This document shows positions 1-42,135 of a DNA stretch of 64,000 nucleotides, one piece after another; the first letter of the stretch is position 1; every line of letters begins with the position of its first letter. The stretch lies in sequence record NC_041994.1; one strand, given 5' to 3'. The translations under genes and the position numbers were made by a program. The notes beneath the pieces were generated by a model. That model worked only from the letters and a program-made list of their open reading frames with translations, searched no databases and had not been told where the DNA came from.

Positions 1-576
1 CTGCCAGAGTTTCTCGATGCGTGGAAGGACTACGACATCGACCTCAACCGGATTATCCGCTGGGATATCAAAGAGGTGAAGGAAGACTTCCCTAAACCGG
101 AGGATATGGAAGAACGTGACTACGAACAATTCGGTCCATGGGGCACTCAATACGCTATGCTGCACTTCGTAGCGCCGCGTAAGGGCCACACGTTCACGAA
201 CCGTATCCTGAACCTGAAATCGGGTGATATCCCACGTTTGTTTACGCTGCTCAAGAAACATTGGGACCACACGCAGATGCTCTGGGACCCACTGCCCAAC
301 ATTGAGTACATCCCACCCTCTACGCCGCGTAGCCGTTTCGTGTCGAAGGTACGTGCCATTACTGACATGTACACCATCGTCCCGTCTGGTGATCCTGAAC
401 ACATCCGTAATAAAAGCAACGAGCGTGTGGTCGGTGCTGTGCGTGACGTGCTGGGGTTGATTGATGACAGCTATATACTGCTGGAACAACCAGAGCACGA
501 CGACGTACCACTGGACCCGGGCTTGAACATCGCGGGGGAATTAGCCAAGACTTACTTTGATGAGATCAACTCATGA
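1..576 (+). CDS. 5'-truncated protein carrying the shared C-terminal IN-x module (fusion member)
   Basis: Frame is open from base 1. C-terminus VVGAVRDVLGLIDDSYILL...[16 protein letters not shown] matches the 9.2-11 kb paralogues. Confidence 0.8.
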   Translation: MPEFLDAWKDYDIDLNRIIRWDIKEVKEDFPKPEDMEERDYEQFGPWGTQYAMLHFVAPRKGHTFTNRILNLKSGDIPRLFTLLKKHWDHTQMLWDPLPNIEYIPPSTPRSRFVSKVRAITDMYTIVPSGDPEHIRNKSNERVVGAVRDVLGLIDDSYILLEQPEHDDVPLDPGLNIAGELAKTYFDEINS

Positions 577-1490
577 AGGAGTTCGGACAGATAGATACGT
601 TGGCGCTGTATAAGCGCCTTCGCCACCGTGAACCTAAAAACTACCGACTGGATCGAATACTCATGTCAGGCATCAATGAATCGGATGATGTGAAGGAACC
701 CAAAGTAGAGGAGCTGGGTCAACGTGGCTTCGCTGCCCTGCGTCGCAACATCTTACCCGGCACCCGTGCATTGCTGCGTATCTCGGACAAACCGCTTGAC
801 CTCAGTAAACTCAATCCGAGCTATCTTGAACAACTCAAACCAGAGCCCGTTGTAAAACCGACGGCTTCTATGGTCATGCTGACAATCGAACTGTTGTCAC
901 GCTTGGCGACAGAGATGGGTGATGTCGCTCACTCTGAAGAAGGCTACACGGACTTCGATGGGTTTGCGTTTGCGGCTATCTACGTGGACCGTGTGATCAA
1001 GGAACAGTTCGCAGGTGAGCTACCGTCGCCGATGCACATGGAGCTGCTGAGCCGGATGCATCTGGACCCACTGCACAAAAACATGGCGGACCGCGATTAT
1101 CTAATCGAACCGGGTCGGTTGAATACCACTGACCGGGTGTTGGGTCTGGTGCGTGACTTCATTTCCTTTACCTTGGACCGCCACTGGCCAGACGAACATC
1201 TGGAGAAGCTGGCCAAGATGAAGGAAGTGGACAAGCAGCTCCACTACATCGTCGCTCCATGGCTGCGCCATCGCCGTAACACCGATCAACGCATCGTGCA
1301 TGTACCGAAACCACACGGTCTGTATCACGATGGTTGGTTGTATCAGAAATTGTTAGACGCCCAACAGCCCCAAGATCGGGACTTCTTCAACGTGTGGACA
1401 ACCGAAGACAGCAACCGACTTATTCCGCGTGACGTACTCGAACGCGCTGTCGACCCATCACTACCCCCTTTTAAGAAGGACGATGTATGA
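573..1490 (+). CDS. hypothetical protein (305 aa)
   Basis: ATGA overlaps with both neighbours. Internal [17 protein letters not shown] weakly resembles the upstream gene. Confidence 0.8.
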
Positions 1491-2230
1491 GCATCATGAA
1501 CGACCGCTGGATCATTACCCAGTGCGAACCACCCACCCACGTGGTGAACGTCCACACGCCCGGTCGTCCTGACGAACTCGCTTGGGCTGGACTGACTCAC
1601 GAACCAGAACATCTTGCTCGTCTCGTCAAGAACTTCCATGCGCATTTGGTGACAGACGAGATCCTCCAGCGGGATCTCGAATGGCGTCCGATGATCGAAC
1701 CTTTTGTGCGTGAATGCGTGCGTGAGGTTGAAGACTCCAAGGTCATCTCCTACGGTGTTTCCAGCTTCGGCTATGACGTGCGTCTGGCTGCGGAGTTCAA
1801 GATCTTCACTAACGCTAACGGTGGTGTGATCGATCCGAAGCGCTTGGACGAGTCGGCGGTGTTGATCGATGGGATCGTGCGCACTGACGAGTGGGGTGAC
1901 CGCTACGTCATGCTGCCACCGAACAGCTACTTACTCGGTCGCACCATGGAATACTTCATTATTCCACGGGACATCATGGTGGTCTGCCTCGGCAAGTCGA
2001 CCTACGCCCGCTCTGGCGCGATCGTCAACGTGACGCCTATCGAAGCTGAGTTCGAAGGCAACGTGGTGATTGAGATTTCCAACTCGACCACCCTACCGAT
2101 GAAGATCTACGTCGGTGAAGGTGTGTCGCAATTCTTGTTCCTCCAAGGTAACGAGCCATGTATGGTCTCCTATAAAGACCGTGGCGGGAAGTACCAAGGC
2201 CAAACAGGGATCACCCACGCAAAGGTGTGA
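1487..2230 (+). CDS. dcd: dCTP deaminase with N-terminal extension
   Basis: Motifs [39 protein letters not shown] and KYQGQTGIT. Confidence 0.95.
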
Positions 2231-2231
2231 C

Positions 2232-2582
2232 ATGTCAGAAGAAACCATCCGGCTGCAAAATCTTCGTGAAATCTGTCATTACGTCATTCTCCGTGACTTA
2301 AAGATGGGTGAAGATCTTCGCGATCGGGTGGTGGCGTTGAATGAGACTCTGAAGCGGACCTATCCAGTGGATACCCGCTTCGGTTTTATGTTGTCTAACG
2401 ACCACAGTCTGATCAACATCACCCCCGAACAGATTCGCCCGGCCAGCGAACAGATGTACTTCCACTGTTTCCGTATGGGCCCAGACAACATCATCACTGA
2501 AGAAGTGGTGGCGTTCTGGTTGGTCGACTTTAGACTGGGTGTCATCGATGACCAGTCAGCCAACATTTATACACTCCAGTAA
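2232..2582 (+). CDS. hypothetical protein
   Basis: ATG immediately after the dcd stop; the track start at 2115 overlaps dcd. Confidence 0.7.
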   Translation: MSEETIRLQNLREICHYVILRDLKMGEDLRDRVVALNETLKRTYPVDTRFGFMLSNDHSLINITPEQIRPASEQMYFHCFRMGPDNIITEEVVAFWLVDFRLGVIDDQSANIYTLQ

Positions 2583-2588
2583 GGGATT

Positions 2589-3602
2589 ATGATGCGGCAC
2601 GAATTTTCTGTGCTTTACCACCGTGGTTGTAATGACGGTATTGCTGCCGCGTGGGCAGCGCGTGAGCGTTTAGGCTCCGGTACAACTTACAGGCCGTATC
2701 AGTACGGTGATGCTGTTCCCGATGGCTTGGTCGGTAAGCATTTGATCCTTGTGGATCTGTCTATGCCGGCAGACCTGATCAAAGAACTCTTGCGCAGTGG
2801 CGTGTTGTCGGTGTTGGTGATCGACCATCATAAGACCGCCATCAAACACCTCGCCGCGGCTAAAGCCGTACCGTGCCACACCTTCGACCAGTACCTGGCA
2901 TTGTTGGATGCTGGGAACCTCGTCCACATCAAGGTGTTCAAGTCATTCAGCTTGAACCACTGTGGTGCGGTGTTGACGTGGGCATTCTTCAACAACCACG
3001 ACTGGCAACTCCCAGAAGAACTCTGGCGTCCACTGATGCCTAAGGTCCTCACCTACATGGAAGACTACGACCTGTGGAAGCGTAAGCTGCCATACGTCGA
3101 TGAAGTCAATGCCTGGCTGATCAACGGTAACCAAAAGATGGAAAACGTCGCCAAGATCATTCTACCCAATGGCGATATTCACCCTGAAGTACTGAATGTC
3201 GGTATCGCGCTAATCAACTACGATCGCAAGATTGCCAAGTCGGTAATCCGCGAGTACACCCGTGAAGTCATCCTCGACGATGGTAAGCGGATGGCTCTGA
3301 TCAACGCACCGCATCACCTGCGTAACATGATCGGTGACATGCTGGCTGAGCAGTACGACATGGTGGCCTGTTTCACCGTACGTCGTGAGAAGGTCATCTA
3401 CAGCCTGCGATCGGGTGGTCGTTATGACGCCACGGTATTCTCCGAGGCATATGGCGGTGGCGGACATGCCGACGCAGCTGCATTCACCACACTGACGATG
3501 GGTTTGCCTGCCATCGCTACCCAAATGCCTTTCCACAAACTGACGCTACGGCGTCGTCTGCGCAATGCGTGGACAGCCCTCACCGCACGGAGTTCATTGT
3601 AA
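2589..3602 (+). CDS. DHH/DHHA1 family phosphoesterase
   Basis: YHRGCNDG, IDHHKT, YSLRS and GGGHADAA motifs. Confidence 0.9.
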   Translation: MMRHEFSVLYHRGCNDGIAAAWAARERLGSGTTYRPYQYGDAVPDGLVGKHLILVDLSMPADLIKELLRSGVLSVLVIDHHKTAIKHLAAAKAVPCHTFDQYLALLDAGNLVHIKVFKSFSLNHCGAVLTWAFFNNHDWQLPEELWRPLMPKVLTYMEDYDLWKRKLPYVDEVNAWLINGNQKMENVAKIILPNGDIHPEVLNVGIALINYDRKIAKSVIREYTREVILDDGKRMALINAPHHLRNMIGDMLAEQYDMVACFTVRREKVIYSLRSGGRYDATVFSEAYGGGGHADAAAFTTLTMGLPAIATQMPFHKLTLRRRLRNAWTALTARSSL

Positions 3603-3994
3603 TGGCCGAACGTTTCGAAGGACACGGACATGAGCCTATCGCTCGATTGATCGCAGGCAATTTGTACACGACCAAAACCGAACCCCTGAAGTGGGCCGGT
3701 GAAAAGGGCGGTGGTATGTGGGTACCGATTCGTGAGGCGATCTTCCATCCGTTTCAGTGGGCGGGATGGTTGGTGTATCGCATCACGTATTACCAGCGCT
3801 TTCCAGCTGTGATCGAGGAGCGTTGGCTTCGTCTTGGTTGGAACGAAGTTATGCGTATCCCACGTACCGATGGCGATGGTTACCATCTAGTACCTCGTCG
3901 CCCTGAAGGTGAGAAGAGCTACTGGGGCCGCTTCAAGCACGCCTGGGCCGTGTTTCGTGGCAAAGCTGACGTTGTGTACTGGATGGGCCAGTAA
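3602..3994 (+). CDS. hypothetical Trp-rich protein
   Basis: TAATG coupling to the DHH gene; followed by a terminator. Confidence 0.7.
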   Translation: MAERFEGHGHEPIARLIAGNLYTTKTEPLKWAGEKGGGMWVPIREAIFHPFQWAGWLVYRITYYQRFPAVIEERWLRLGWNEVMRIPRTDGDGYHLVPRRPEGEKSYWGRFKHAWAVFRGKADVVYWMGQ

Positions 3995-4001
3995 CGGCAT
4001 A

Positions 4002-4030
4002 GGGAGCCCCGTAGGGCTCCCGTGTTTATT
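4002..4030 (+). terminator. stem-loop terminator
   Basis: GGGAGCCC-cgta-GGGCTCCC followed by gtgtttatt. Confidence 0.7.
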
Positions 4031-4049
4031 CCCTAAAGAAACTGAGGCC

Positions 4050-4057
4050 TATATCAC
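4050..4057 (+). promoter_or_regulatory. putative phage early promoter TATATCAC
   Basis: Recurs at 27488, 39600, 47398 and 51266, with variants at 11038 and 15128. Resembles the phiKZ early motif TATATTAC. Confidence 0.7.
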
Positions 4058-4134
4058 CAGAGTGCATTAATAGAAACACCTATGCCGTACGTGACGTAGT
4101 CACAAACTCCATCTACTATCAAAAGGATACACCC

Positions 4135-4536
4135 ATGCCACAAATCAAAGGCGATTCCATCTACCTCGACATCGACGGTGAAGCCAACGTACGTCTGGAC
4201 CTGTTCCCTCGTGACCAACCCCTGGACATCGATCTGATCATCACCGGTACTCAGATCACCGACAACGAAGACGACAGCACCGACATGGTGAATGCGTACT
4301 TCCGTGCCAGCAAACAACAACCCGACGGCTCGTGGAAGGAAATGCGCGGTAACGATTTCTCCTACGCCTTCCAGCGTCAGGCCCAACCACAACTCGACGC
4401 CCTTGGCCAGGAACACTCCGGTCCGTGGCTGTGCAATCAACACCACGATTACAAGTACACCCACATCCCGCTGCATCTGCCGCGTGAACTGAACAAAGAC
4501 ATCTTCAAGAACCCACTGGGTAAGAAAGACGTCTAA
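4135..4536 (+). CDS. hypothetical protein (first gene after putative early promoter)
   Basis: SD aagga, strongly biased codons, own terminator at about 4550-4570. Confidence 0.8.
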   Translation: MPQIKGDSIYLDIDGEANVRLDLFPRDQPLDIDLIITGTQITDNEDDSTDMVNAYFRASKQQPDGSWKEMRGNDFSYAFQRQAQPQLDALGQEHSGPWLCNQHHDYKYTHIPLHLPRELNKDIFKNPLGKKDV

Positions 4537-4582
4537 CGCAAAAGGGTGAGGGGTACGCCCCTCACCTACCTAAGGAGTTGGT

Positions 4583-5359
4583 ATGTCTTGGCTTAACTGG
4601 TTGGGTCGCAGTGGTTTGCCTGTCGTTTCTTTTCAGGATCAATGTCGAACCATCCTGAAGAAGGGTGGGTTGCCTTGTTTTTCTGTTCGTTGGACTAAGA
4701 ACCAGCTGGATGATTATTTCGTTGTTCAGTTTGTTAATGACGATGGGTCCTACAACGGGGCTACCCTAAGCGACCTTCGCTCACCGGGTGTAGGCCAATG
4801 CGTCCTTCGTGAAGAATACGTGGATCGCATGGGGCTTGTGGATATCGATTCTGTCCTAACGAAAAACGGGTCAGACTCGCAGCTTTTGTGGGCCAACATC
4901 CACACGCTCGCCCAGAAGTTACCCTACGACGTGAAGGTGTGCGTACTCACCTTGGCTGACGGTCAACCGGTTTGGGTTAAGGGTGCGTTCAATATCAATG
5001 ACGCTGGGTTTAGCGCTGAGTGTGTCTACGATCACCCGAACAGCACCAGTGGTGTAAAAGCTGTTTTCATCAGCTGGGAACTCATCCCTTATTACGTCGG
5101 GACGTTCCACTACCAATACACCGAGGAGCGCATTGAGGACTTCACGTACCACGGTTGGATGGGTAATCGTGTTACCGAAGAAGCCAAAGACAAGCACACC
5201 CAAGGCATCCTCGATACGATCCGCCACAACCTGGATTTGGAACTTACCAAACCCACCTTGCTACAACGGCTAGAAAAGAATCTTGAAAACCGCAAGCTGC
5301 TGGATAAAGAGCTTGCTGAACTTATCCAACTGATGAAGAAACCAAATGTACACGAGTAA
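4583..5359 (+). CDS. hypothetical protein
   Basis: SD taaggag; 258 aa ORF. Confidence 0.8.
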   Translation: MSWLNWLGRSGLPVVSFQDQCRTILKKGGLPCFSVRWTKNQLDDYFVVQFVNDDGSYNGATLSDLRSPGVGQCVLREEYVDRMGLVDIDSVLTKNGSDSQLLWANIHTLAQKLPYDVKVCVLTLADGQPVWVKGAFNINDAGFSAECVYDHPNSTSGVKAVFISWELIPYYVGTFHYQYTEERIEDFTYHGWMGNRVTEEAKDKHTQGILDTIRHNLDLELTKPTLLQRLEKNLENRKLLDKELAELIQLMKKPNVHE

Positions 5360-5843: not shown

Positions 5844-5897
5844 GATTTTTACTGTATTGGAGTATTGTTTGTTATCCCTCCAATAAGGTAAGTCCTG

Positions 5898-6641
5898 ATG
5901 TCGCACCGTGAGCATATCCTGGCTATCAAAGCCCAACCACTGGCCGCACTGGCTGTCTTCAACAACGCTGGCTTTACCCCAGCCACTGACGCGATCAGCA
6001 ATGTGCTGTTCACTCAGTTCCACGAACACACCGAAACCATCTGGCGTGACACCGCGGAATTCTGGCCTGAGCAAAACGGTAAGCCGGTTGATCCGTTGAG
6101 CCACCAGCCAAGTCACCGTCAGGTCCTGCCATATGCACTGCTTACCCGTCGTGTTGATGGCGTGAAACAGACCAGCGTTTACCAGCGCGTCAAGGGTATC
6201 GGCGAAGAGCGTCTGCTCAAAGGTCACTCGATCGGTTGGGGTGGTCACCTCGCTGGTAAGGGCATTCAGTACGACGAGCACGAGGGCATCGACACGTGGC
6301 CTTCGATCCTGGCTGGCCTGAAAGCTGAGATGGCTCAGGAATGCGGCGTGAACACTGATGACGCTGGCGTGACCGTGAAACTGCTGGGTTACATCCACAG
6401 CTACGCTTCGCCGGTTGATGCGCTGCACCTGTCAGTGGTGCTGGAAGTGGAAGTGCCGGCCGACTACCCGGTATCGGTTACCGAGAAAGGCCTGAACTTC
6501 AAAGGCTGGTACACCGAAGAGCAGTTGTTCGCACTGTGGCAAGAACTGAAGTCGACTGACGTCAAGTTCGAAAGCTGGTCGAACTTCATCTTCGAAGCTT
6601 CGCTCAAAGGTCACCAAGGCGATGTAGGCACCCAGGCTTAA
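5898..6641 (+). CDS. Nudix-fold protein (COG4112-like), degenerate Nudix box
   Basis: RQVLPY...YQR...EERL...SIGWGGH pattern. Box reads AEMAQECGV rather than RExxEExG. Confidence 0.75.
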   Translation: MSHREHILAIKAQPLAALAVFNNAGFTPATDAISNVLFTQFHEHTETIWRDTAEFWPEQNGKPVDPLSHQPSHRQVLPYALLTRRVDGVKQTSVYQRVKGIGEERLLKGHSIGWGGHLAGKGIQYDEHEGIDTWPSILAGLKAEMAQECGVNTDDAGVTVKLLGYIHSYASPVDALHLSVVLEVEVPADYPVSVTEKGLNFKGWYTEEQLFALWQELKSTDVKFESWSNFIFEASLKGHQGDVGTQA

Positions 6642-6716
6642 TCGTTTTATGGAACGGGGGCAACCCCGTTCTATTCCGTATCTACAGAAAACTCAAACGT
6701 AAGGAATCCTCGCACC

Positions 6717-7148
6717 ATGGATCATAAAGCGTACAACCGTAAGCTGGTCGAGCATTTGTTCAACCTGCTCGAAACAGCACAGGGAGATCGCTGGTACATT
6801 CACTACGACCTGAACTTCATGGAAGAGAAGCAAGGGTTGGAACGCTACATGCAGCCCGATGGTGCGTTGGTTCTTAACTTCCATCCGGTGGCTTGCCGTA
6901 ACTTCCACATCGGCGATGAGTTCACCACCTGCAACATGTCGCTGGATGGTTCCAAGCAACACCTGATCCTGCCACACAACTGCATCCGCGGTATCGTGTT
7001 GGAACTGGAGGAAGGTACTGTGCTGGTACCCGCCACACCGATCATGGCAGTAATGATGACCCCACCTGCACCACCGGCGGATCTGATCGACGAGCCGGCT
7101 GTCCCCGAAACCCCGGACAACGTAGTTTCGTTGTTCCCTAAACACTAA
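6717..7148 (+). CDS. sspB: SspB-like ClpXP adaptor homologue
   Basis: DGALVLNFHPVACRNFHIGDEFTTCNMSLDGSKQHLILPHNCIRGI aligns with the SspB core. Pro/acidic linker and NVVSLFPKH tail. Confidence 0.7.
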   Translation: MDHKAYNRKLVEHLFNLLETAQGDRWYIHYDLNFMEEKQGLERYMQPDGALVLNFHPVACRNFHIGDEFTTCNMSLDGSKQHLILPHNCIRGIVLELEEGTVLVPATPIMAVMMTPPAPPADLIDEPAVPETPDNVVSLFPKH

Positions 7149-7165
7149 CCAACAGAGAGTAAAGC

Positions 7166-8734: not shown

Positions 8735-8739
8735 CGGTA

Positions 8740-8774
8740 AGACGCTAGGGGGTGTCCCCTAGCGTCTATTTTTA
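8740..8774 (+). terminator. rho-independent terminator
   Basis: 12-bp stem AGACGCTAGGGG/CCCCTAGCGTCT followed by attttt. Confidence 0.85.
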
Positions 8775-8789
8775 TTTCGTGGGGTCTTT

Positions 8790-9248
8790 ATGCGCAGTGT
8801 TACCTTTCTTGCTCAGATCGACGCTACGGCGCTCACAACACCCCACTACGTTATCAGCATCAGCGATAAAGAAGACGTTCGGTTTAGTTGTGAACATTTC
8901 GATGTAATGCGCTTGAAGTTTGAGGACATCGAACAGCACTGCGCTGGGCAAGAACTGTTCTCGGTACAGCATGCCCGTGCTGTGTTGAAGTGGGCTAAGC
9001 GAGTGCCCGATGGAGCAGCCGTGGTGGTGCATTGTCAGGCTGGGGTTTCTCGGTCTGCGGCTATTGCAAAGTTCATGAACGACCATCTTGGGTATCTGCT
9101 GTTATTGGACAAACCCTGTTACGGCAAGCTGGACAAATACAACGGGCATGTTTATGGCCTGTTGCGTTTGCTTGACTCTGACCGTAGTGCCTTGGCGATG
9201 ATGCTTGAAGAAGAGCAAGATCGCCAGTCTGTCTTAGTTAAATGGTGA
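8790..9248 (+). CDS. protein tyrosine/dual-specificity phosphatase-fold protein
   Basis: VHCQAGVSRSAA (HCx5R) P-loop. Confidence 0.88.
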   Translation: MRSVTFLAQIDATALTTPHYVISISDKEDVRFSCEHFDVMRLKFEDIEQHCAGQELFSVQHARAVLKWAKRVPDGAAVVVHCQAGVSRSAAIAKFMNDHLGYLLLLDKPCYGKLDKYNGHVYGLLRLLDSDRSALAMMLEEEQDRQSVLVKW

Positions 9249-9252
9249 CGAC

Positions 9253-9573
9253 ATGAATCTTTCTATTCAGTTACCCGACCCTCTGCGTATTGCCAAAGAA
9301 GGTCTGTTAGAAGAAGTCATGGCATCAGCGACCTACAACGCTGACTGGGCCATGGAAAAGATGGAGCTCAGCAATGAGACCCGGGAGCTGGTGCACTATG
9401 CTGCACGCCATGTGGCGGCGGGTGTGCTGGACATCATCGACGGGGGTACTGACCAAGGTCGTTACCTACTGCTACCTATGTCGGTGGTCACGAACCTGAC
9501 TGAGCATACGCCGAATCTGGCGGGTGAGTTGTCAGAAGCACTTCAAGACCTTTATGAGGGGATCAACAATTGA
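9253..9573 (+). CDS. IN-x paralogue family, tandem copy 1
   Basis: LPDP...GVLDIIDG...YLLLP...NLAGEL...YEGINN. Confidence 0.85.
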   Translation: MNLSIQLPDPLRIAKEGLLEEVMASATYNADWAMEKMELSNETRELVHYAARHVAAGVLDIIDGGTDQGRYLLLPMSVVTNLTEHTPNLAGELSEALQDLYEGINN

Positions 9574-9905
9574 ACGCTTTTCGACTGAACATTCCTGATC
9601 CATTGGCCGATGAGCGCCGTGTGTTGGGTAATGCGTTTTCTGACGTTTACAAGTCTGTCATGTACGACATGAACGAACGTTATCCCGGTGAGGACTACGT
9701 CGATGTGGTGCGTGACTGTGTAGAAACCGCCATGACCGAAACACTGCGAGTCTTCGACGGACGTGCCGGGTTCGGTGAAGGTAACAGTACGTACCTGGTC
9801 CTGCCGATGGACATGGTCGAACCACTGCGTGACGATGACGTCCCGACTTTGGCTGGTTCGTTAGCCAGCACACTGCTTCGTGATTTCAGTCGCATCAACA
9901 GCTGA
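9570..9905 (+). CDS. IN-x paralogue family, tandem copy 2
   Basis: TTG start with SD gagggg. IPDP...LRVFDG...YLVLP...TLAGSL...FSRINS. Confidence 0.85.
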   Translation: MNAFRLNIPDPLADERRVLGNAFSDVYKSVMYDMNERYPGEDYVDVVRDCVETAMTETLRVFDGRAGFGEGNSTYLVLPMDMVEPLRDDDVPTLAGSLASTLLRDFSRINS

Positions 9906-9912
9906 GGTGGAT

Positions 9913-10233
9913 ATGCATTTAGAATTGATTCTGCCTGATCCGGTAGAAGAAGCCCGCAAGACGTTCCTTGGCGATATCGTCAACATGCGTGAAGCGGCTA
10001 TTCTTCTGTACGCCACTAACCGTGATGATCCTTTCATCGGTCCTGTAGCCAACGCTGTCAACTACGTCACCGGCCAGTTCTTCGAGTACCTCGATGGTGG
10101 TGAGTTGCACAATGCGGGTTACACCGTGTTGCCGAACCAGATGATCCGTCGGGGCACTGAAGGTGTCCTGCCGAACATCGCAGGGGATCTGCGTAGCACC
10201 TATGATTCCCTGTTCGAGGACATCAACGACTGA
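9913..10233 (+). CDS. IN-x paralogue family, tandem copy 3
   Basis: SD gaggtg. LPDP...FEYLDG...YTVLP...NIAGDL...FEDIND. Confidence 0.85.
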   Translation: MHLELILPDPVEEARKTFLGDIVNMREAAILLYATNRDDPFIGPVANAVNYVTGQFFEYLDGGELHNAGYTVLPNQMIRRGTEGVLPNIAGDLRSTYDSLFEDIND

Positions 10234-10241
10234 GGTGTGTC

Positions 10242-10652
10242 ATGAAAGCCGATAAAGAGTCACCCTTGGGGCAAGCACTCAACCGTGCCGCCACCGAGGC
10301 GCTGGAAGGCCGTCCCGATGTACTACACCAACCACGTGTGGATTTTATCGAGAAGGTCTTAGACGCTCGCGACGACGCCTATGAAGACTTCGCGTGTGTG
10401 ATGCCGCCTGAGTTCCACGAACCAGTCCATAAGGCGATCACATCGGCTGTGGTAAAGACGTTGGGTGTTTTGGACGACGGTTACGTGTTATTGCCAAGTA
10501 TTGACCGCCTGGTAGAATCGGAGGCCGCGTATCTGGTCGTCCCGATCCGACCACACACGGAGGGTCCTCGGGCGATAGACACCAAGACGTTCAATGTCGC
10601 TGGCGATCTGGCAGTGATCTTCTCCACGATCTACGATGACGTCAATAACTGA
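10242..10652 (+). CDS. IN-x paralogue family, tandem copy 4
   Basis: TLGVLDDGYVLLP...NVAGDL...YDDVNN. Confidence 0.85.
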   Translation: MKADKESPLGQALNRAATEALEGRPDVLHQPRVDFIEKVLDARDDAYEDFACVMPPEFHEPVHKAITSAVVKTLGVLDDGYVLLPSIDRLVESEAAYLVVPIRPHTEGPRAIDTKTFNVAGDLAVIFSTIYDDVNN

Positions 10653-10659
10653 GGTGAGT

Positions 10660-10980
10660 ATGGACGTAAAGATCGAAGTTCCAGATCCCATACAGCGGGA
10701 GCGTCAATTCCTCCTGATGCAAATCTGGGACGTCCGTAACGATGTTCTGGATTTGGTCGGTCCAAACTTCGAAGACAACCAGGCAACATTTGTCGTGGAA
10801 GCAATTGACAAAACCATCGATGGGGTGTTGGGAATACTCGACGGTGTGGATCATCAACCCAAAGACTACGTGCTCCTACCGCGCCACTTCTTCAAAGCTG
10901 ACGAACGACTGCCTAACATGAATGGTAACCTCGCCGAAACCTTCGAAAAGATGTTCTTGACCATCAACGAAGACGACTGA
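10660..10980 (+). CDS. IN-x paralogue family, tandem copy 5
   Basis: VPDP...GVLGILDG...YVLLP...NMNGNL...FLTINEDD. Confidence 0.85.
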   Translation: MDVKIEVPDPIQRERQFLLMQIWDVRNDVLDLVGPNFEDNQATFVVEAIDKTIDGVLGILDGVDHQPKDYVLLPRHFFKADERLPNMNGNLAETFEKMFLTINEDD

Positions 10981-11020
10981 CATAGACCTGCCCTACGGGG
11001 CAGGCCCTATGCTTTTTATT
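10981..11020 (+). terminator. CATA-flanked hairpin terminator closing the paralogue array
   Basis: cata-GACCTGCCC-tacg-GGGCAGGCC-c-tatg-cttttt. Confidence 0.8.
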
Positions 11021-11037
11021 TAACTCAAACTGAGGTT

Positions 11038-14577: not shown

Positions 14578-15108
14578 ATGAATATCATCGAGGCGTTTAA
14601 ACGCTGTCCACCGGGCTACTCCATCAAAGACCGTCGTTCCGGTTGGAATGAGTACCACGTTCAATACGGTCGTAATGAAAAGGGTGAGCTGTATTGGACC
14701 GCCGGTATGACGGTGGGTGGGATACTGAACCCTACCGACGTCACCGTAGCGCGCTACAAAGGCGATGACTACGAAGTCTACATGTGGGGTCAACGTGAGC
14801 CTGCAACGATCCTACCGACGTTTGAGCAGGCCTACGCAGAGATTGCCAAGAACTCTGTAGAGACCCATGGCAAGAACCTTGTGGGCAAGATCCACAGTAC
14901 GGTTACTGAGCGCATGAATGCCAGCATCGCCAGTGGCGTCGATCCCGTGGTAGCAAAAGATCTGGTAATGGGGACTACCCGAGACATCTTGGGTATTCTG
15001 GACACGAAGGCTGAGGTCAATCATGTCTATCGGATCGCTCGAAACAAGTACAACGCCCCCAATATGGCGGGTGGGTTGTTGGCCATGTTTGACGAGATAA
15101 ATGGCTGA
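14578..15108 (+). CDS. IN-x family member fused to an unrelated N-terminal domain
   Basis: C-terminus TRDILGILD...YRI...NMAGGLLAMFDEING. Confidence 0.8.
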   Translation: MNIIEAFKRCPPGYSIKDRRSGWNEYHVQYGRNEKGELYWTAGMTVGGILNPTDVTVARYKGDDYEVYMWGQREPATILPTFEQAYAEIAKNSVETHGKNLVGKIHSTVTERMNASIASGVDPVVAKDLVMGTTRDILGILDTKAEVNHVYRIARNKYNAPNMAGGLLAMFDEING

Positions 15109-21695: not shown

Positions 21696-22157
21696 GTGGC
21701 TATTCATATTACTGTTGTAGGGTTTGGCCGTGAACCTGATCTCTCGGTCAAGGCGCGGTTGGAGTACTGTGGTTTCCTTGAGGCCTCAGAAGGGAAAATT
21801 ATCAATGGCAACTGTGAATTCTACAACGTCAAGACGCAGTACCCTGACGCGGTAGAGCTGGTTCACATCGTCGTGCAGGATGAGAAGATCGACTGTCGCG
21901 ACATGGCGTTGGTCTTCGATATGCCTTTCGATGGCCTTACCCAGGATACCCCAGAAGCAACAGCACGGGCTGAGCTGATGGGTCTGATCTTGGCTGAAAC
22001 CGCAGGGCGTTGTGGTGCACTGGAATTGGTTCGTGAAGTCGAAGGCCTGTTCGAGACACCCGATGGTCTGATGGCCTACGTGTTCAAGAATGTTTCGTCT
22101 GCAATCGAAGACGACATTGCCAATGGCGTGCGCCGGCAGATCCGCGAAATCAACTGA
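21696..22157 (+). CDS. hypothetical protein, possible divergent IN-x family member
   Basis: Ends DDIANGVRRQIREIN-stop. Confidence 0.7.
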   Translation: MAIHITVVGFGREPDLSVKARLEYCGFLEASEGKIINGNCEFYNVKTQYPDAVELVHIVVQDEKIDCRDMALVFDMPFDGLTQDTPEATARAELMGLILAETAGRCGALELVREVEGLFETPDGLMAYVFKNVSSAIEDDIANGVRRQIREIN

Positions 22158-30836: not shown

Positions 30837-31136
30837 ATGGATATCAGAAAGGCTCAGACGTCGATTGAAGAGCTTAACGAGGTCATGGAGATGGTATCCG
30901 ACAGTTTCTATACTGTCGTTTCCTTTAACCGCGATAAAGCGATCGGTGGGTTAGTGCAACCGGGTATGTCTACCGATCAAGAGAAGGTTATTGCCAATGC
31001 CGTTAATGCAGGAGTACGGGCTACGCTTAACAGCATTGAAGAACTCGATGGGGAGATACGGTTTAAGACAAGAGGGTGTACTGCCATTTTGTCAGGTGAT
31101 CTCTGTCGAGGTATGTTTGAGGAAATAAATACATAG
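30837..31136 (+). CDS. IN-x family member (dispersed)
   Basis: AGVRATLNSIEELDG...LSGDL..GMFEEINT; SD ggaggg. Confidence 0.7.
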   Translation: MDIRKAQTSIEELNEVMEMVSDSFYTVVSFNRDKAIGGLVQPGMSTDQEKVIANAVNAGVRATLNSIEELDGEIRFKTRGCTAILSGDLCRGMFEEINT

Positions 31137-32706: not shown

Positions 32707-32743
32707 TTGCTCCTCACCTCACTTTTTAAAGCAAGGACTAACC

Positions 32744-33574: not shown

Positions 33575-33583
33575 GGAGCGATT

Positions 33584-33865: not shown

Positions 33866-33909
33866 TGCTAGACATCTAAGGCAAGCCAACTTCATACAGA
33901 GAGCGTCCC

Positions 33910-34782: not shown

Positions 34783-34813
34783 GCTAACCCCTCTTTGCAA
34801 GGAACCAAAGAAA

Positions 34814-35200: not shown

Positions 35201-35203
35201 TGG

Positions 35204-35464
35204 GTGAGATTGGTTAAGTCGTGCCGCCTCCTTAGAAAGAGGCTACTTAACCGTTGGCAATACTGGCGCCTGCTGACTGAGGTTGAAAAAGCAGGCGGTG
35301 CTGTTGTCAACAAGGTAGCCACCTGCACACAGTGTACCCCCGAAACGATGTGCTGCCCGGGTCATCACTGCGAACACTCAACCGCCATGCAACAGTACAC
35401 ATGGCGGTTGCGTTTGCTGGATAACGAATACTGGCGGATTAAATTATCTGGAGCTAACCCATGA
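35204..35464 (+). CDS. small Cys/His-rich protein
   Basis: CTQC...CCPGHHC. Confidence 0.6.
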   Translation: MRLVKSCRLLRKRLLNRWQYWRLLTEVEKAGGAVVNKVATCTQCTPETMCCPGHHCEHSTAMQQYTWRLRLLDNEYWRIKLSGANP

Positions 35465-35853
35465 ACGATGATGATGTTGTAACCATCGACCCCGAATTGG
35501 AAATGGAAGATCGCGAAGAAGAGGATGAGGACGACACGCCCGTGGCGGTCCAACGCATCCAAGACCTTCAGCGTGAGTTCATCCACTCTGTGCAAATGGT
35601 GATGGAACCTTTGGTCGTGGCCAACCCTGAACACCGGGGTTCGATCGAGGCCACAGCCGAAGGCATCCTGCAAGTGATTGAAGGCAACGGCAGCGACGAG
35701 GGCTACGTTCTCGTTAAACGTGACGATGCCAATTTCGCCATGGTCCCTTGCGTGAAGGAAGTCTACGAAGAACACCTGCGTGATTTCGTGGATGCCACCG
35801 GTCTGGACATCTCCGTAGGTCTCACCTCGATGTTCGACGACGTCAATAACTGA
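35461..35853 (+). CDS. IN-x family member with acidic N-terminus
   Basis: GILQVIEG...GYVLV...DISVGLTSMFDDVNN. Confidence 0.8.
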   Translation: MNDDDVVTIDPELEMEDREEEDEDDTPVAVQRIQDLQREFIHSVQMVMEPLVVANPEHRGSIEATAEGILQVIEGNGSDEGYVLVKRDDANFAMVPCVKEVYEEHLRDFVDATGLDISVGLTSMFDDVNN

Positions 35854-35909
35854 CGGCATACGGCCCGCTCCTCACGGGGCGGGCTTATGTCCCCTTTAAG
35901 GAGAAAGAA

Positions 35910-36662
35910 GTGTTTAAACGGTTAGTGATAGAGAAGCGACACAGTCGACTGGGCAATGAAGAAAAGTTGCTCGCACTACACGCTATGGAACTCGACATCC
36001 CCGTGGTTACCACCGTCGAGAAAACCGTAGCCCGCGGTCATTTCAAGTTTCGCCCAGATGACCTCGTAGCCGGTAGCGTTGGCTTCATGCACCACGCCAT
36101 GCGTAACTTTGGCATTCAGGTTCACCACAACCATCCGTACCCAGAAGTGCTGGCTGAGTTCATGCATCGCAAAGTGCTGCCAATCCACAGCATCTATGCC
36201 CTGCGCAAGTACTTCATCCAGGGTGGGCGACCAGTGTTCGTCAAACCATTACAGACCAAGAAGTTCACCGGGTTTGTGGCGGATAACATTGGTGATCCTC
36301 GTTTCAATGGCGCTGGTAACCAAACCGAGATCATCGTGGTGGAGCCAGTGAACTTTGTTCACGAATGGCGGATCTACATTGTCAATGGCTGGATGACGCA
36401 GATCTCTGACGTCCCCGGTGGCAAGACAGGCTGCTTCCCTAACCCGGCGTTTGTCGGCGGAATGGTCGCACGTCTTAACAAGGCCAACATCGAACATGTC
36501 CCAGCTGCTTACTCGTTGGACATCGGTGTGTTGGATACTGGTCAAGTGGCCTTGGTCGAAATCAATGATGCTTACTCCCTCGGGGCGTATGGCGATATCA
36601 CCGCAGCCAAGTACTGGGAAGTGATTGGTACCCGGTGGAAACAACTCATGGAGAACAAGTAA
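35910..36662 (+). CDS. ATP-grasp domain protein (DUF4343/R2K-like)
   Basis: PVFVKP, EWRIYIVNG, YSLDIG and LVEIN. Confidence 0.8.
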   Translation: MFKRLVIEKRHSRLGNEEKLLALHAMELDIPVVTTVEKTVARGHFKFRPDDLVAGSVGFMHHAMRNFGIQVHHNHPYPEVLAEFMHRKVLPIHSIYALRKYFIQGGRPVFVKPLQTKKFTGFVADNIGDPRFNGAGNQTEIIVVEPVNFVHEWRIYIVNGWMTQISDVPGGKTGCFPNPAFVGGMVARLNKANIEHVPAAYSLDIGVLDTGQVALVEINDAYSLGAYGDITAAKYWEVIGTRWKQLMENK

Positions 36663-37372: not shown

Positions 37373-37470
37373 AGGCATAAGCCCCCCTCTTGCAAAAGAG
37401 GGGTTTGGCTTGGCAACGTTTTACCTGATGGTATGTTGCTGTAAACAAATGGACTTTCAGGTGGAACCCC

Positions 37471-37956
37471 ATGAGTCAAAAGATTTCAGGTTTTCCCATA
37501 CTCAGCATCCTCTCTGGAGAAATCTGGATTGAATGTATCCAACGCCCTAACGAAAACGTCGTGTGGGAACACCGGCGTTTCAGCCCTGACTTATTCAATG
37601 GTGCGTCTGCCTATGAAGTGGCTGTGGCTAATGGCTTTGAAGGAACAGTGGATGAATGGCTGGCAAGCCTGATCCCCACTATTTCTTTTCCTGCTCTTAA
37701 AGTCGGTGTGGTCACCACGCCTAAACTAGAACTTGATGTTAACGGTCTTGCCCGGTTACCGTCTAAGCCCTACGGTGATTTCATCCTTGATATGGCCCAC
37801 GTCTATTATGCTGACGGTAGCTTTGTAGAAGTTACTGGTTGCACAAAAGAAGAGTTTGCAGGGTCCTCTTTCATCAAAATTCCAACTGATGATTGGCTCA
37901 TCTTAAAAGATGACGTCGTCAGCATCGTGGTCTCCTACTTAGGAGATCTCGCCTAA
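37471..37956 (+). CDS. probable virion/tail-associated protein
   Basis: GASAYEVAVANGFEGTVDEWLASL motif typical of phage tail/minor structural proteins; TATG at 37432. Confidence 0.65.
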   Translation: MSQKISGFPILSILSGEIWIECIQRPNENVVWEHRRFSPDLFNGASAYEVAVANGFEGTVDEWLASLIPTISFPALKVGVVTTPKLELDVNGLARLPSKPYGDFILDMAHVYYADGSFVEVTGCTKEEFAGSSFIKIPTDDWLILKDDVVSIVVSYLGDLA

Positions 37957-38045
37957 GCATACCGCTCCATTTTATGTGACCATTGTATTTTTTTCCTTTG
38001 GAAGAAAAGTGATCAATGCGCACGTTAACATGGAGTACCTGTCAC

Positions 38046-38921
38046 ATGGCAATTGTAAAACGCAATAAGAGCTCGATCGCTGGCTTGCCGGCTGATTTGG
38101 CAGCTCTGGGCCAGGCGATCGCCGATGAGGCGACTGCTCGCGGCCAAGCCATCACTGATGCCAGCGCTACTGCTGCGCAGAAATCGGCAAACCTGACCGA
38201 CCTGACCGACGTTGTTGCGGCTCGTACCGCACTGAGCGTGAAGTCTGCGGCCGAAGTTACTGCCGAGATCAACCTCGCCAAACTGGCCATCGGTGCCAAC
38301 TACAGCGTTGCTGACATCGCTGGCCGTGACGCCCTGGAAGACTTGGACATCAACGACCGCGTATTCGTGGCCGACGATGGCGACACCAAGTGGGCTATCT
38401 ACAAACCGTTCGCTGTATCCGCTGGTGAAGTTACCAGCTGGACCAAGCTGTACGACCAGGACGCGTTGAACAACGCAATCAGCGCTGCTGCCATCAAGGC
38501 CTCTTATGAGTCCAACGATGACACCAACGCATTCACCGACGCTGAGAAAACCCGTCTGGCGGCTGCACTCGTTGCTGCTGACCTGGCCGGCGATCTGGAC
38601 GTCGCTGCTCCGGCTGACAAGCCTGTTTCGGCAGCGGCTGCCAAGGCCTACATCGATAGCAAAGCAATCGGTGGTGGTTTGCTCATCACTTCCGAAACCG
38701 TTGCTGTTTCGGGTACTGACACCATCACCTTGGCCAATGCACCGGTCAATGGCGTGGGTGGCGTTCTGAACTTCGGTACCGTCCGTTATGTTGACGGTGG
38801 TGGCATCGCTTACGATGCGCCGCTGATCGCTACCGGTGATCCTGAAGTGTTCACTGTGTCGACCGATTCGGCCGGCGAGTGGAACGGCTTCAACGTGCGG
38901 GTTCAGTACCTGCACGCTTAA
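38046..38921 (+). CDS. probable virion structural protein
   Basis: Ala/Asp/Thr-rich, strong codon bias, TATG at 37973, terminator at about 38940-38965. Confidence 0.7.
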   Translation: MAIVKRNKSSIAGLPADLAALGQAIADEATARGQAITDASATAAQKSANLTDLTDVVAARTALSVKSAAEVTAEINLAKLAIGANYSVADIAGRDALEDLDINDRVFVADDGDTKWAIYKPFAVSAGEVTSWTKLYDQDALNNAISAAAIKASYESNDDTNAFTDAEKTRLAAALVAADLAGDLDVAAPADKPVSAAAAKAYIDSKAIGGGLLITSETVAVSGTDTITLANAPVNGVGGVLNFGTVRYVDGGGIAYDAPLIATGDPEVFTVSTDSAGEWNGFNVRVQYLHA

Positions 38922-39022
38922 GGCTGTCGCTTAGGAATCCTCCCCCTTCGTGGGGGAGGGTTTATGCCCCTCACAAATCTACAACCCCCTCTTATCCTTT
39001 ACAACCCAACCAAGGAGTTACC

Positions 39023-39595
39023 ATGAACGCTGACACGATCTATGTTGTTATCGTGGCCAATCGCATTATCCAACGCCGCTTGTCGAAGTTGTTTAATGCC
39101 GCCTTGGCGTGTCACGATTTGAATGTCACGGAGTCGTCGGTGCCCGGTCTGCCGACCTTTATCGAGGACCCGTACAACCGTGAGACCATGCGCTTTCAAT
39201 TCAGCGAACACGCACTGCGTTTGCCGATGGTGGCTGTTTGTGCCCGCAATGAAGGCCATGAAGACATCGTCACACCACCAATCCCTGACACCCCGTTCCA
39301 CAGTCAGGTATTCATCTCGGTAGTGGGCACTATCCACTCCGGCAAGACCGCGGTGATCCGTGAGTTGGAGAATGCACTTAAACGGGACGAGATCCCAGAA
39401 GACCGCATTTGCCGCTACACGCTGGACTACCCAAGCGACGATGCTGTGCTCACCACCGAACAACACATCGAAAGCATCGCCAACATGCGTGCGCGCAACA
39501 TCGTGCTGTTGTACCAGCCGCCGCGTCGCATGACCCACATGAAGGATGTATTCACTAACTGCGGTTACAAGTTTTCCGTATCAGAAGAATCCTGA
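39023..39595 (+). CDS. hypothetical protein with a P-loop-like segment
   Basis: SD aaggag; VVGTIHSGKT. Confidence 0.7.
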   Translation: MNADTIYVVIVANRIIQRRLSKLFNAALACHDLNVTESSVPGLPTFIEDPYNRETMRFQFSEHALRLPMVAVCARNEGHEDIVTPPIPDTPFHSQVFISVVGTIHSGKTAVIRELENALKRDEIPEDRICRYTLDYPSDDAVLTTEQHIESIANMRARNIVLLYQPPRRMTHMKDVFTNCGYKFSVSEES

Positions 39596-39599
39596 AACC

Positions 39600-39607
39600 T
39601 ATATCAC
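39600..39607 (+). promoter_or_regulatory. putative early promoter TATATCAC
   Basis: Exact motif directly after a stop codon. Confidence 0.7.
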
Positions 39608-39638
39608 CAACACGTATATCCAAAGAGAAACATTCGAC

Positions 39639-39920
39639 ATGGCACGTCAAACTAACAATGAGTTGTCTAAACTCCCAGGCTTCTTCTACTACCCGCAAGA
39701 CAAGACGGGTCTGGAAGAGCTGACCTTCGACCAACGCGCTGAGCTGCGCACGAATCAAGGCAACTACATGGTGGCGCTCTGGAAATCAGAAGCCAACATG
39801 AAAACCGACTTGGTGTGTGACTTCGACAACAGTCGCATTCCTACCCATCGTCGTCCCGGGACTGTGATCCCTGGCAACGGCGATGTTCCTTTCGACCTAC
39901 GAGAAGTGATCGCCATATGA
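39639..39920 (+). CDS. hypothetical protein
   Basis: ATG after the promoter leader. Confidence 0.7.
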   Translation: MARQTNNELSKLPGFFYYPQDKTGLEELTFDQRAELRTNQGNYMVALWKSEANMKTDLVCDFDNSRIPTHRRPGTVIPGNGDVPFDLREVIAI

Positions 39921-40417
39921 GAAAGCCAAAGTTCTATTTCGGCAAACGTCGTCTGAAGCATGACGAAGGCAAGCAGAACGGTAAGTTTGTAGTACCGTCG
40001 TTGCTGCGTGGTTGGTTCACCTTGCGTTATAAGCTGCGCCGCTGGAACCTGATTCTCAAGACAGCGGTCAACGGCAGCAGTGGTGCGGTGGGCGACAACA
40101 TGCGCATCAGCACCAACCACTACACCCAGATGCTCACGTTCCGTCGTCGTATCGCCAAGGCACTGAGCCTCAAGCTTTCGGTGCAGCGTCTGCAAGCTTT
40201 GCTTAAAGACATCGAAGACTACCGTGACGAACAGGCCAAAGTGACCGTCACCCCAATGGTTCGTGAAATCGCCAACAAAGGCTACTACGACGGCGTCAAG
40301 AAGGTGGATCACGCCGACGATGATGCAGTCAACTTCGAGCGACCAAGTCACTGCATGACGTATCCGGGCAATCTGACTATGTGCCTCACTGATAAGTGCC
40401 GGGTGCATCCGAAATGA
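39917..40417 (+). CDS. basic hypothetical protein
   Basis: ATGA overlaps at both ends. Confidence 0.7.
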   Translation: MRKPKFYFGKRRLKHDEGKQNGKFVVPSLLRGWFTLRYKLRRWNLILKTAVNGSSGAVGDNMRISTNHYTQMLTFRRRIAKALSLKLSVQRLQALLKDIEDYRDEQAKVTVTPMVREIANKGYYDGVKKVDHADDDAVNFERPSHCMTYPGNLTMCLTDKCRVHPK

Positions 40418-41019
40418 CGACTATTGCCTGGGACGGTATTTATCTGGCGGCGGACAGTCAGTCCACACGTGATTTCCCGGGTACTGGTCACTGCGAGCAC
40501 TGCAATGAGAGTCTTTCTAAGACGGTTAACTCGGTTCGTAAGATCCTGATACCGTTAGCAAAAGACAATGTGTTCTTTCGAGAACAGAAACTCATTGCAG
40601 TGAGTGGTGCTGGTGATAGCGGGTTTGTTGGCCTTTACCGCATGGGCCTCATTAACAACGTGCCACTCGGCACAATCTTCACGATGGCCAGTGAGCTACA
40701 CAAGAACAAAGCCAATACACCGACAGCCGTACTGCTGGTCGTCACCGATGTTGCTGTCTGGGAAGTCAAGCATACCAAGTTTCAAGCCCGAGCTGAAGAA
40801 ATTACCCAAGTCCCCTATGCAATAGGTACTGGGGATGCGGCTGCAATGTTGGCAATGAAGCGACTGGGCCTCACAGCGATGGCTGCTGTAGGCTGCGCTA
40901 TCGACGTTGATCCGTTTAGCGGTGGGGAAGTGTCTTACGTTTCCTGTCGTGACGAGGTGTCTAGCAAGGTCCAAAAGTATAAATGGACCCCAGAAGACAT
41001 CGACGAATTCTTCCAGTAA
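40414..41019 (+). CDS. Ntn-hydrolase (HslV/proteasome-like) peptidase
   Basis: MTTIAWD...LAADSQ, RKI, SGAG, AIGTG...A and DPFSGG; CEHC insert. Confidence 0.8.
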   Translation: MTTIAWDGIYLAADSQSTRDFPGTGHCEHCNESLSKTVNSVRKILIPLAKDNVFFREQKLIAVSGAGDSGFVGLYRMGLINNVPLGTIFTMASELHKNKANTPTAVLLVVTDVAVWEVKHTKFQARAEEITQVPYAIGTGDAAAMLAMKRLGLTAMAAVGCAIDVDPFSGGEVSYVSCRDEVSSKVQKYKWTPEDIDEFFQ

Positions 41020-41076
41020 TCCAACCCTCCCCTTAACGGGAGGGATTTATTCCGTCTCCTGTAAGGAAAAACTACG

Positions 41077-41787
41077 ATGAACAATAAAGCCGCTGAATAC
41101 CTCGGTAACTACGCGCCCTACTACTGGGCAATCTGTGTGGAAACCCACCGTGCACTGGGTGTTGATGCACAGGACCTTTTCGATGAAGTGGTCATCACTC
41201 CTCGTTTGAGTAACAGTGAACTGGAAGTGGTGATCAACAAGCTGCGTGCTCGTGTGCCTGATCTGGGCTTCAGTCAAGCGCAGAACCACATCTTCCGCAT
41301 CATGGGCTACCGCAGCTCTGGCTTGGCTTACGAGATCCGTCGTAGCTACAGCGAACTGCGCAAGCTCGAAGAACTCACTCACCCGAACCTGTGGCACGAA
41401 TACCTGCACGTCTATCGCGACGACTCGGTGTTCGGCTATCAATACGGCAAGGACGAGTGCAGCCTGTTCTACCTGGAGTTTGTGTTCGAGCCTCGTATCC
41501 GCGGCATGCTCGGTCACGAAGACATTCCTGATGACCTCATGGATGCCTACCTGACCATGCTGAACATCTCCCAGCAGAAGACCATGTCCGAACCTATGGC
41601 ACGTACACTGGCTGAGCAAATCGAGCACGACCTGCAAAACCGTGTACGCCACACCACCGCCATGAACCTGGTGGCCATCGCACTGGGTTACAAAACCTGG
41701 CCGTTGGCACTGGGTGCTTGCGTGGATAGCAGTATCCCGAACCTGCGTATCCCTAGCCGATTTCAATCGGTGAAAGAAGCAGCCTGA
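41077..41787 (+). CDS. hypothetical protein
   Basis: SD aagga; 236 aa. Confidence 0.8.
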   Translation: MNNKAAEYLGNYAPYYWAICVETHRALGVDAQDLFDEVVITPRLSNSELEVVINKLRARVPDLGFSQAQNHIFRIMGYRSSGLAYEIRRSYSELRKLEELTHPNLWHEYLHVYRDDSVFGYQYGKDECSLFYLEFVFEPRIRGMLGHEDIPDDLMDAYLTMLNISQQKTMSEPMARTLAEQIEHDLQNRVRHTTAMNLVAIALGYKTWPLALGACVDSSIPNLRIPSRFQSVKEAA

Positions 41788-41865
41788 GAAGAATTACCCA
41801 TCAGGGTATAGTGTGTAGAAATACCGTTTCCATAACGAACCCAACCAAAGAAAAAGGATTACCGC

Positions 41866-42135
41866 ATGTCTCTGTCCAACATCGCTACCGCTATCCGTAC
41901 CTCCGTTGCCGCTGAACTGGAAAAAGTACAACTGCCAGAAGGCGTCGAGGTTTCGGCTGAAGTCAAGCAGCAGTTCGCTGACGCTGGTACCCGTGGCACC
42001 CTGGCTGGTCTGGACTCGCTGCAAGGCGCCGGCTTCGTGCACATCACTGGTTCCGTGGAAGAAGGCAACGACGACGTGGCCAACGCTACCCCAGCTGAAA
42101 TCCTGGGCGAACTGTTCGGTTCCGTGAACTCGTAA
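41866..42135 (+). CDS. IN-x family member (divergent, monocistronic)
   Basis: AGTRGTLAGLD...GFVHI...ILGELFGSVNS; strong codon bias. Confidence 0.75.
   Translation: MSLSNIATAIRTSVAAELEKVQLPEGVEVSAEVKQQFADAGTRGTLAGLDSLQGAGFVHITGSVEEGNDDVANATPAEILGELFGSVNS

Follow-up and report, generated by a model that had tools for sequence, protein, structure and literature searches.

A family of small acidic paralogues with a position-fixed C-terminal tail in Pseudomonas phage Noxifer

Pseudomonas phage Noxifer, whose host is P. fluorescens SBW25, has a genome of 278,136 bp (NC_041994.1), and bases 214137-278136 of that record are identical in sequence to the 64,000-nucleotide stretch analysed here, which we call the window. 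Since the Noxifer genome codes for a nuclear shell protein, a PhuZ tubulin and split multisubunit RNA polymerases, the phage belongs to the nucleus-forming (chimallin-encoding) jumbo phages. The window carries a family of small acidic paralogues that share a C-terminal module and end in a common short tail. About ten such genes had been listed in an earlier reading made from the letters of the window alone (the sequence-only reading). All of them lie where that reading had placed them, on the + strand, and all are annotated as coding sequences for a 'hypothetical protein'; the ten C-terminal tails that it quoted proved exact, and the last 15 nucleotides (nt) of gp294 and gp249 are indeed the same (five shared codons plus stop). 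The genes are given below with their positions in the window.

gp310, 1 to 576, + strand: protein of 233 amino acids (aa), cut by the window start, the full gene beginning 126 nt upstream; tail DEINS; hidden Markov model (HMM) E 1e-18.
gp310 module, about 310 to 573, + strand: C-terminal part of gp310, the N-terminal domain of which matches phrog_7880.
gp297, 9253 to 9573, + strand: stand-alone module of 106 aa; tail EGINN; phrog_18616 at E 3e-37.
gp296, 9570 to 9905, + strand: stand-alone module of 111 aa with a TTG start; tail SRINS; phrog_18616 at E 1e-37.
gp295, 9913 to 10233, + strand: stand-alone module of 106 aa, the reference for residue numbering; tail EDIND; phrog_18616 at E 4e-41.
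gp294, 10242 to 10652, + strand: module protein of 136 aa, extended at the N-terminus and with an insert in a loop; tail DDVNN; phrog_18616 at E 6e-37.
gp293, 10660 to 10980, + strand: stand-alone module of 106 aa; tail INEDD, running three residues beyond the Asn; phrog_18616 at E 7e-42.
gp285, 14578 to 15108, + strand: 176 aa, with an unrelated N-terminal domain and the module at about 14863 to 15105; tail DEING; HMM E 1e-15 to 1e-19.
gp256, 30837 to 31136, + strand: probable, divergent member of 99 aa, with a match that runs from helix 2 up to the C-terminus; tail EEINT.
gp249, 35461 to 35853, + strand: 130 aa, with a very acidic N-terminus (net charge -26) and the module; tail DDVNN; HMM E 3e-24.
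gp239, 41866 to 42135, + strand: possible, divergent member of 89 aa; tail GSVNS.

In pairwise BLASTP comparisons the five tandem genes at 9253-10980 were mutually linked (E down to 2e-11) and gp294 was also tied to gp310; some of the pairwise matches between members were weak. An HMM built from the five tandem genes only ranked gp249 (E 0.0015), gp310 (E 0.004), gp285 (E 0.033) and gp256 (E 0.16) as the next four best of the 559 open reading frames (ORFs) of the window, all above noise, and one iteration of the model brought eight genes to E-values of 1e-18 to 1e-39. When a profile of 61 family sequences was run against the 3262 ORFs of the whole Noxifer genome, the pieces of which were scanned separately, it returned the same eight genes plus gp256 (E 0.0075) and no other convincing match. 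With hhalign, gp256 reached a probability of 93% (E 2.7e-7) and gp239 one of 48% (E 1.8e-4), both being aligned from helix 2 to the C-terminus. Furthermore, the orthologue of gp256 matched the family at E 5e-5, and the orthologue of gp239 and its 88-aa relatives in other phages did so at E 0.003-0.006. Judged by these comparisons, eight genes (gp310, the tandem gp297 to gp293, gp285 and gp249) may be taken as confident members, gp256 as a probable and gp239 as a possible one. The gene at 21696, which had been offered as a possible further member, is not part of the family, as hhalign gave it a probability of 0.1% and its product ends in I-N without a further residue.

The module is about 100 residues long, acidic and always located at the C-terminus of the protein. 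In an AlphaFold2 model of gp295 made with 31 family sequences (mean predicted local distance difference test score, pLDDT, of 78), helices were predicted at residues 12-33, 42-61 and 93-105, with a non-regular, fairly confident stretch at 62-92 and a fall of the pLDDT to 64 across residues 101-106. From the N-terminus on, the module would consist of a strand with a P-D-P turn, two long helices and a conserved Y-x-[LV]-x-P loop, followed by a P-N-x-A-G turn that leads into the last helix and the position-fixed tail. In the alignment of the 61 sequences (weighted column shares, gp295 numbering) the best kept positions outside the tail are Y70 (97%), L57 (90%), L93 (79%) and position 61 (Asp 76%, Glu 24%), and within the tail positions 101 (Phe 85%, Tyr 15%), 104 (Ile 72%, Val 28%) and 105 (Asn 94%, Asp 6%), so that the conservation of Asn105 exceeds that of every core residue but Y70. 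Mean column entropy is lowest in the tail, residues 101-106, at 1.43 bits, other segments having 2.1-3.2 bits; loops 34-41 and 76-86 stand highest at about 3.1-3.2 bits. Free variation of the N-termini and of a middle loop had been claimed for the family, and by column entropy the N-terminus and the two loops are its most variable parts. The small members have isoelectric points (pI) of 4.0-4.6 and net charges of -6 to -26.

The tail is made up of a hydrophobic residue, Phe or Tyr, usually two acidic residues, Ile or Val, Asn, one small polar residue and the carboxylate. In 58 of the 61 family sequences the stop comes exactly one residue past the Asn (or Asp), and the final position in those 58 is taken by N, S, T, D or G alone; the remaining three, gp293 included, carry 2-5 further residues, mostly acidic. 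The distance from the free C-terminus that a docking motif would call for is therefore kept in 58 of 61. All longer relatives carry the module as their C-terminal domain, as seen in the fusion proteins gp310, gp285, P0044, P0047, P0049, P0050, P0053, P0054 and a 506-aa protein of the distant metagenome contig L020, and the tail is kept in all relatives found. The fixed C-terminus noted earlier is thus borne out by the lowest-entropy segment of the alignment, by the constant distance to the stop and by the place of the module in fusions, all of which shows a C-terminus that is constrained beyond what is usual for the end of a fold.

A search of the 3262 Noxifer ORFs with the pattern [FY]..[IV]N.$ gave 11 matches where 1.2 were expected (P about 7e-8), and all 11 were annotated genes, none of them a spurious ORF. 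The codons for Phe, Ile or Val and Asn vary among the members, and the DNA 3' of the tails differs, holding the ribosome-binding site of the next gene in some cases and hairpins in others. As neither the synonymous codons nor the downstream DNA are constant, the tail is constrained at the level of the protein, and a DNA element behind the 15 nt that gp294 and gp249 have in common was ruled out on the same grounds. The weakness of some pairwise BLASTP matches could be taken to mean that there is no family, and that the shared motifs are due to chance or to a DNA-level element at gene ends. HMM E-values down to 1e-39, the excess of tail matches and their absence from spurious ORFs, the varying synonymous sites and downstream DNA, and the fact that the features are kept by orthologues in other phages make that explanation next to untenable.

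Few relatives of the family came to light. Among 1.84 billion representative proteins, a profile search found only 26 matches at E <=1e-3, and a word-seeded search of 5.8 billion proteins yielded 34, all unnamed or 'hypothetical'. Many of the relatives lie on metagenome contigs of 267-284 kb, some of them from compost, and the contigs that were traced belonged to Noxifer-like metagenome phages or, for the most distant members, were too short for classification. A tblastn search with gp295 and P0056 against 50,697 phage records returned only Noxifer or nothing. In the distant contig L020, two neighbouring genes, of 506 and 203 aa, both end in the module. The most widespread orthologue group is that of gp249. 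The tandem array counts five copies in Noxifer, and four and three in two relatives, in the arrays of which no orthologue of gp293 was found; extra tail-bearing small genes lie near gp249 orthologues and beside P0044. The identity between orthologues of each paralogue is 51-75%, as against 40-66% for neighbouring genes. The proposal of an expanded, diversifying module stands as to expansion but finds no support as to diversification, since orthologue identity is in the same range as that of the neighbours and only copy number varies. The paralogues are old and individually conserved rather than rapidly diversifying. Paralogue pairs share 14-29% identity, yet the orthologues share 51-75%, which fits distinct and retained specificities. 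One relative, L030, also has, at 6357-6997, two adjacent 88-aa genes that resemble gp239 and both end in the tail, so that the gp239 subfamily has been duplicated elsewhere too.

At its N-terminus gp310 has a domain with homologues, at 31-37% identity, among the hypothetical proteins of KVP40-type T4-like vibriophages, in which tblastn matched residues 1-98 only; this likeness suggests that unrelated groups of phages have exchanged a domain. Just 5' of the window, an unannotated ORF of 181 aa (record positions 213566-214111) occupies the 419-nt 'intergenic' gap 5' of gp310 and overlaps the start of that gene by about 100 nt in another frame.

The sequence-only reading had not recognised the family, and no characterised relative was found in Pfam, NCBIfam, PADLOC, the PDB, Foldseek or large protein searches. 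At E 0.1 the ten candidate genes matched no family of Pfam or NCBIfam (gp293 gave one noise match), and the nine genes other than gp239 matched none in PADLOC. The gp297 to gp293 proteins match PHROG 18616 from end to end (E 1e-37 to 1e-42) and it is also matched, at 1e-5 to 1e-11, by distant fusion proteins, but this is an automatic cluster without name, function or description; at E 0.1 it did not capture gp310, gp285, gp249, gp256 or gp239, and gp310 falls under phrog_7880. Both phrog_18616 and phrog_7880 are unnamed clusters that hold these same proteins. The gp295 model had no significant Foldseek match in the PDB (best E 4.2), and in BFVD it matched only two Noxifer paralogues. A histone fold was rejected, with a Foldseek E above 4, a probability below 0.1 and a template modelling (TM) score of 0.26. 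The Tctex-type dynein light chain, which is of similar length and opens with two helices, was the best sequence-profile match in the PDB, yet at E 0.026 and 18 bits this was not significant, and it was absent from the Foldseek matches. Neither a family of this kind nor an import signal at a terminus is described in the reviews and papers searched.

New here is that the same tail also ends two Noxifer genes beyond the window, gp201 and gp312. The 61-aa gp312 (record positions 212927-213112), of which only the last 16 residues align with the module, looks like a minimal version of it with helix 2 and helix 3. The 228-aa gp201 (record positions 192821-193507, directly 5' of thymidylate kinase) shares with the module only its last 9-14 residues. 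It matches phrog_16459 at E 2e-32, a cluster that matched none of the ten candidate window genes scanned. In its AlphaFold2 model (pLDDT 76), gp201 is predicted to begin with a helical domain, which a disordered linker joins to an alpha/beta domain; there, three strands come before the last helix, and the tail lies within helix 210-227. Neither homology over the domain of about 135 residues nor a common predicted topology was found between the module and this family. The gp201 model had no significant Foldseek match in the PDB; its alpha-beta-beta-beta-alpha end gave weak, non-significant matches to double-stranded-RNA-binding domains (E 0.4-1.8), which we mention as a lead only.

Homologues of gp201 are PhiPA3 gp222, 201phi2-1 gp283 and phiKZ gp186, the last according to the notes in those records. 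The tail is kept by PhiPA3 gp222, by 201phi2-1 gp283, by a protein of a phiKZ-type phage and by 20 metagenomic relatives down to 30-35% identity, and was present on gp186-type proteins in each lineage examined (phiKZ-like, PhiPA3, 201phi2-1, PS119XW and Noxifer-like). PhiKZ186 is reported to be an early transcript, and its antisense knockdown to have sharply lowered plaque counts (bioRxiv 10.1101/2024.07.31.605949). By chance, the tail would be expected on proteins without the module in 0.12 genes per genome, or 0.002 if the acidic x-x is also demanded. The gp186 family thus resembles the module proteins in having the same tail at the same C-terminal distance, at the end of a C-terminal amphipathic helix, and in being acidic, on the same strand and probably early; it differs in being single-copy and not expanded, in occurring in every chimallivirus lineage examined, and in its predicted alpha/beta domain. 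The motif is present on gp201/gp186 and gp312, proteins that may share a distant common descent with the module. In the 150 of 309 kb of PhiPA3 that were scanned, including the syntenic region, no match to the module was found, which makes the expansion of the module specific to the Noxifer lineage. The tail was seen there only on gp222 and on one unannotated ORF of 66 aa (record positions 228569-228769, between gp241 and gp242), which ends in the tail-like F-A-D-I-S-N.

At a probability of roughly 0.4, we prefer to read the tail as a docking peptide, fixed in position at the C-terminus and carried by variable adaptor bodies. The genes would then form a family specific to the lineage of Noxifer-like nucleus-forming phages, with products that are small, acidic proteins of the adaptor type and not enzymes. 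By means of the tail, and probably also of the invariant Tyr in the loop, all members would dock onto one common partner, phage or host, which would also take the phiKZ gp186-type early protein, and the variable helices, loops and differing N-terminal domains would supply the part specific to each paralogue. Position-fixed docking peptides include the HbYX motif of proteasome activators, the tetratricopeptide repeat (TPR)-binding tetrapeptide of Hsp70 and Hsp90, and the C-terminal tail of bacterial single-stranded DNA-binding protein (SSB). Like these, the tail is a short hydrophobic and acidic peptide at a fixed distance from the carboxylate, with a small or variable last residue and on different carriers; however, there is no sequence identity and the penultimate residue is here Asn, so that the likeness is one of working mode and not of membership. 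A docking or sorting tag had been suggested by the sequence-only reading, and the docking idea gains from the fact that the tail is also carried by the gp186 family, apparently unrelated in other respects, although the docking itself, the common partner and the adaptor role are what we infer.

Several points weigh against this reading. The tail ends an amphipathic helix in both AlphaFold2 models (gp295 and gp201), and its Phe and Ile/Val extend the hydrophobic stripe of L93 and position 97 and so may be part of a buried core, with the Asn as a helix cap. The three members with 2-5 residues after the Asn mean that the rule of carboxylate distance is not absolute, and the two tail carriers in 150 kb of PhiPA3 mean that a hub with many clients is not general to the virus family. 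In addition, hhalign of the gp201 family against the module aligned the last 14 residues only (51%, E 1.5e-4), and because gp201 was retrieved by way of the tail pattern itself this E-value is not independent evidence for the tail.

The main rival, which we hold to be the less likely of the two and on the unlikely side, is that the tail is purely structural, being the end of helix 3 of a small bundle with two core hydrophobics and an Asn C-cap. The family would then be an ordinary lineage-specific expansion of acidic early proteins for host take-over or counter-defence, each with its own targets and with no shared tag, and the likeness to gp186 would be due to distant common descent or to convergence of amphipathic helix ends. 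In keeping with this, the models place the tail of gp295 within helix 93-105 and that of gp201 within helix 210-227, the hydrophobic positions 93, 97, 101 and 104 are helically spaced with entropies like that of the core residue L57, the pI of the small members is like that of many phage early proteins, and extensions are tolerated in three members. Nonetheless, the end of a fold rarely fixes the stop one residue past a polar residue in 58 of 61 sequences when paralogues are only 14-29% identical. The Asn, moreover, is more conserved than core residues save Y70, the same tail with the same acidic x-x is found on proteins of different predicted topology, and the pLDDT over residues 101-106 is only 64.

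The neighbourhood of the genes bears on a further explanation. The features that border the tandem array are as follows.

Terminator-like hairpin with a T-run, 8740 to 8767, + strand: upstream boundary of the gp298 to gp293 unit.
gp298, 8790 to 9248, + strand: DSPc-like cysteine phosphatase with an HCxxGxxRS loop, which opens the hairpin-bracketed unit and is not a family member.
GC-rich hairpin followed by a T-run, 10987 to 11021, + strand: 3' of the array, read from the sequence and absent from the list given by the hairpin scan.

The five-gene array thus follows gp298 inside a hairpin-bracketed unit. The gp298 gene is annotated as hypothetical and matches Pfam PF00782 at E 9e-7, below the cut-off, and in contig L020 a phosphatase with 39% identity to it lies one gene from the module genes. 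Homologues of gp298 were found in 118 phage records, nearly all of them Pseudomonas phages and including the temperate D3 and JBD44; as the phosphatase is common in Pseudomonas phages without the module, a link between the two was rejected and gp298 is given as context only. Tail-bearing genes tend to neighbour genes of nucleotide metabolism (dCTP deaminase, thymidylate synthase and thymidylate kinase). No shared promoter was seen by eye 5' of the members, where sigma-70-type matches were at chance level.

Directly 3' of gp249 lies gp248 (35910-36662), annotated as hypothetical, which is an R2K-clade ATP-grasp protein (PF18299, E 1e-25), and 850 nt upstream of gp239 lies gp241 (40414-41019), annotated as an HslV-family peptidase. 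For the R2K clade, a role in phage-host conflicts has been predicted, namely the ligation of peptides onto proteins (PMC4431377). With such neighbours, the tail might be a signal for processing, modification or turnover that switches or time-limits the whole protein set at once, either as a C-terminal degron for gp241 or a host protease or as the acceptor for an enzyme that modifies C-termini, such as gp248. A constraint that is positional relative to the free C-terminus would suit this, as would the mostly acidic residues added in the extended members. We consider it improbable, given that the adjacency of gp249 and gp248 is absent in three related contigs, which led us to reject a link between the two, and that HslUV-like proteases are reported to be accessory among viruses of this family and to localise to the nucleus in a related phage (PMC10299810), whereas every lineage examined has the gp186 tail. 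No likeness of the tail to a known degron came up, though no search aimed at one was made.

A sorting signal, too, would be expected to look like a terminal tag that many small proteins have in common, and as Noxifer encodes a shell protein and PhuZ, the tail might direct import into the phage nucleus or packaging into the virion. This we regard as more improbable still. None of the members is annotated as a virion protein, the tail is unlike the termini of the Noxifer shell protein and PhuZ, with which it was compared, and in related phages nuclear import cargo is reported to be recognised by residues of the folded surface, with no terminal signal (PMC12908238).

The docking peptide reading can be widened to a docking code used across nucleus-forming phages, in which the gp186-type protein and, in the Noxifer lineage, a dozen further proteins would plug the same position-fixed peptide into one conserved receptor of phage or host. 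In Noxifer-like phages the clients of this receptor would have been multiplied, giving an adaptor set of the hub-and-spoke kind. This wider version seems to us unlikely, more so than a structural tail and less so than a turnover or sorting signal. To our knowledge, no hub-and-spoke adaptor set of this sort has been described for phages.

Most genes of nucleus-forming jumbo phages are without known function, and in a single genome about a dozen of them are here brought together by one testable feature. A tail of six residues ties those genes to a single-copy early gene in each chimallivirus lineage examined. Should the tail be only the end of a helix, a new phage-specific protein module and its fusions would still be cleanly defined. 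If it serves for docking, the receptor that it binds would be a control point of early infection, and the tail would be a handle with which to find that receptor.

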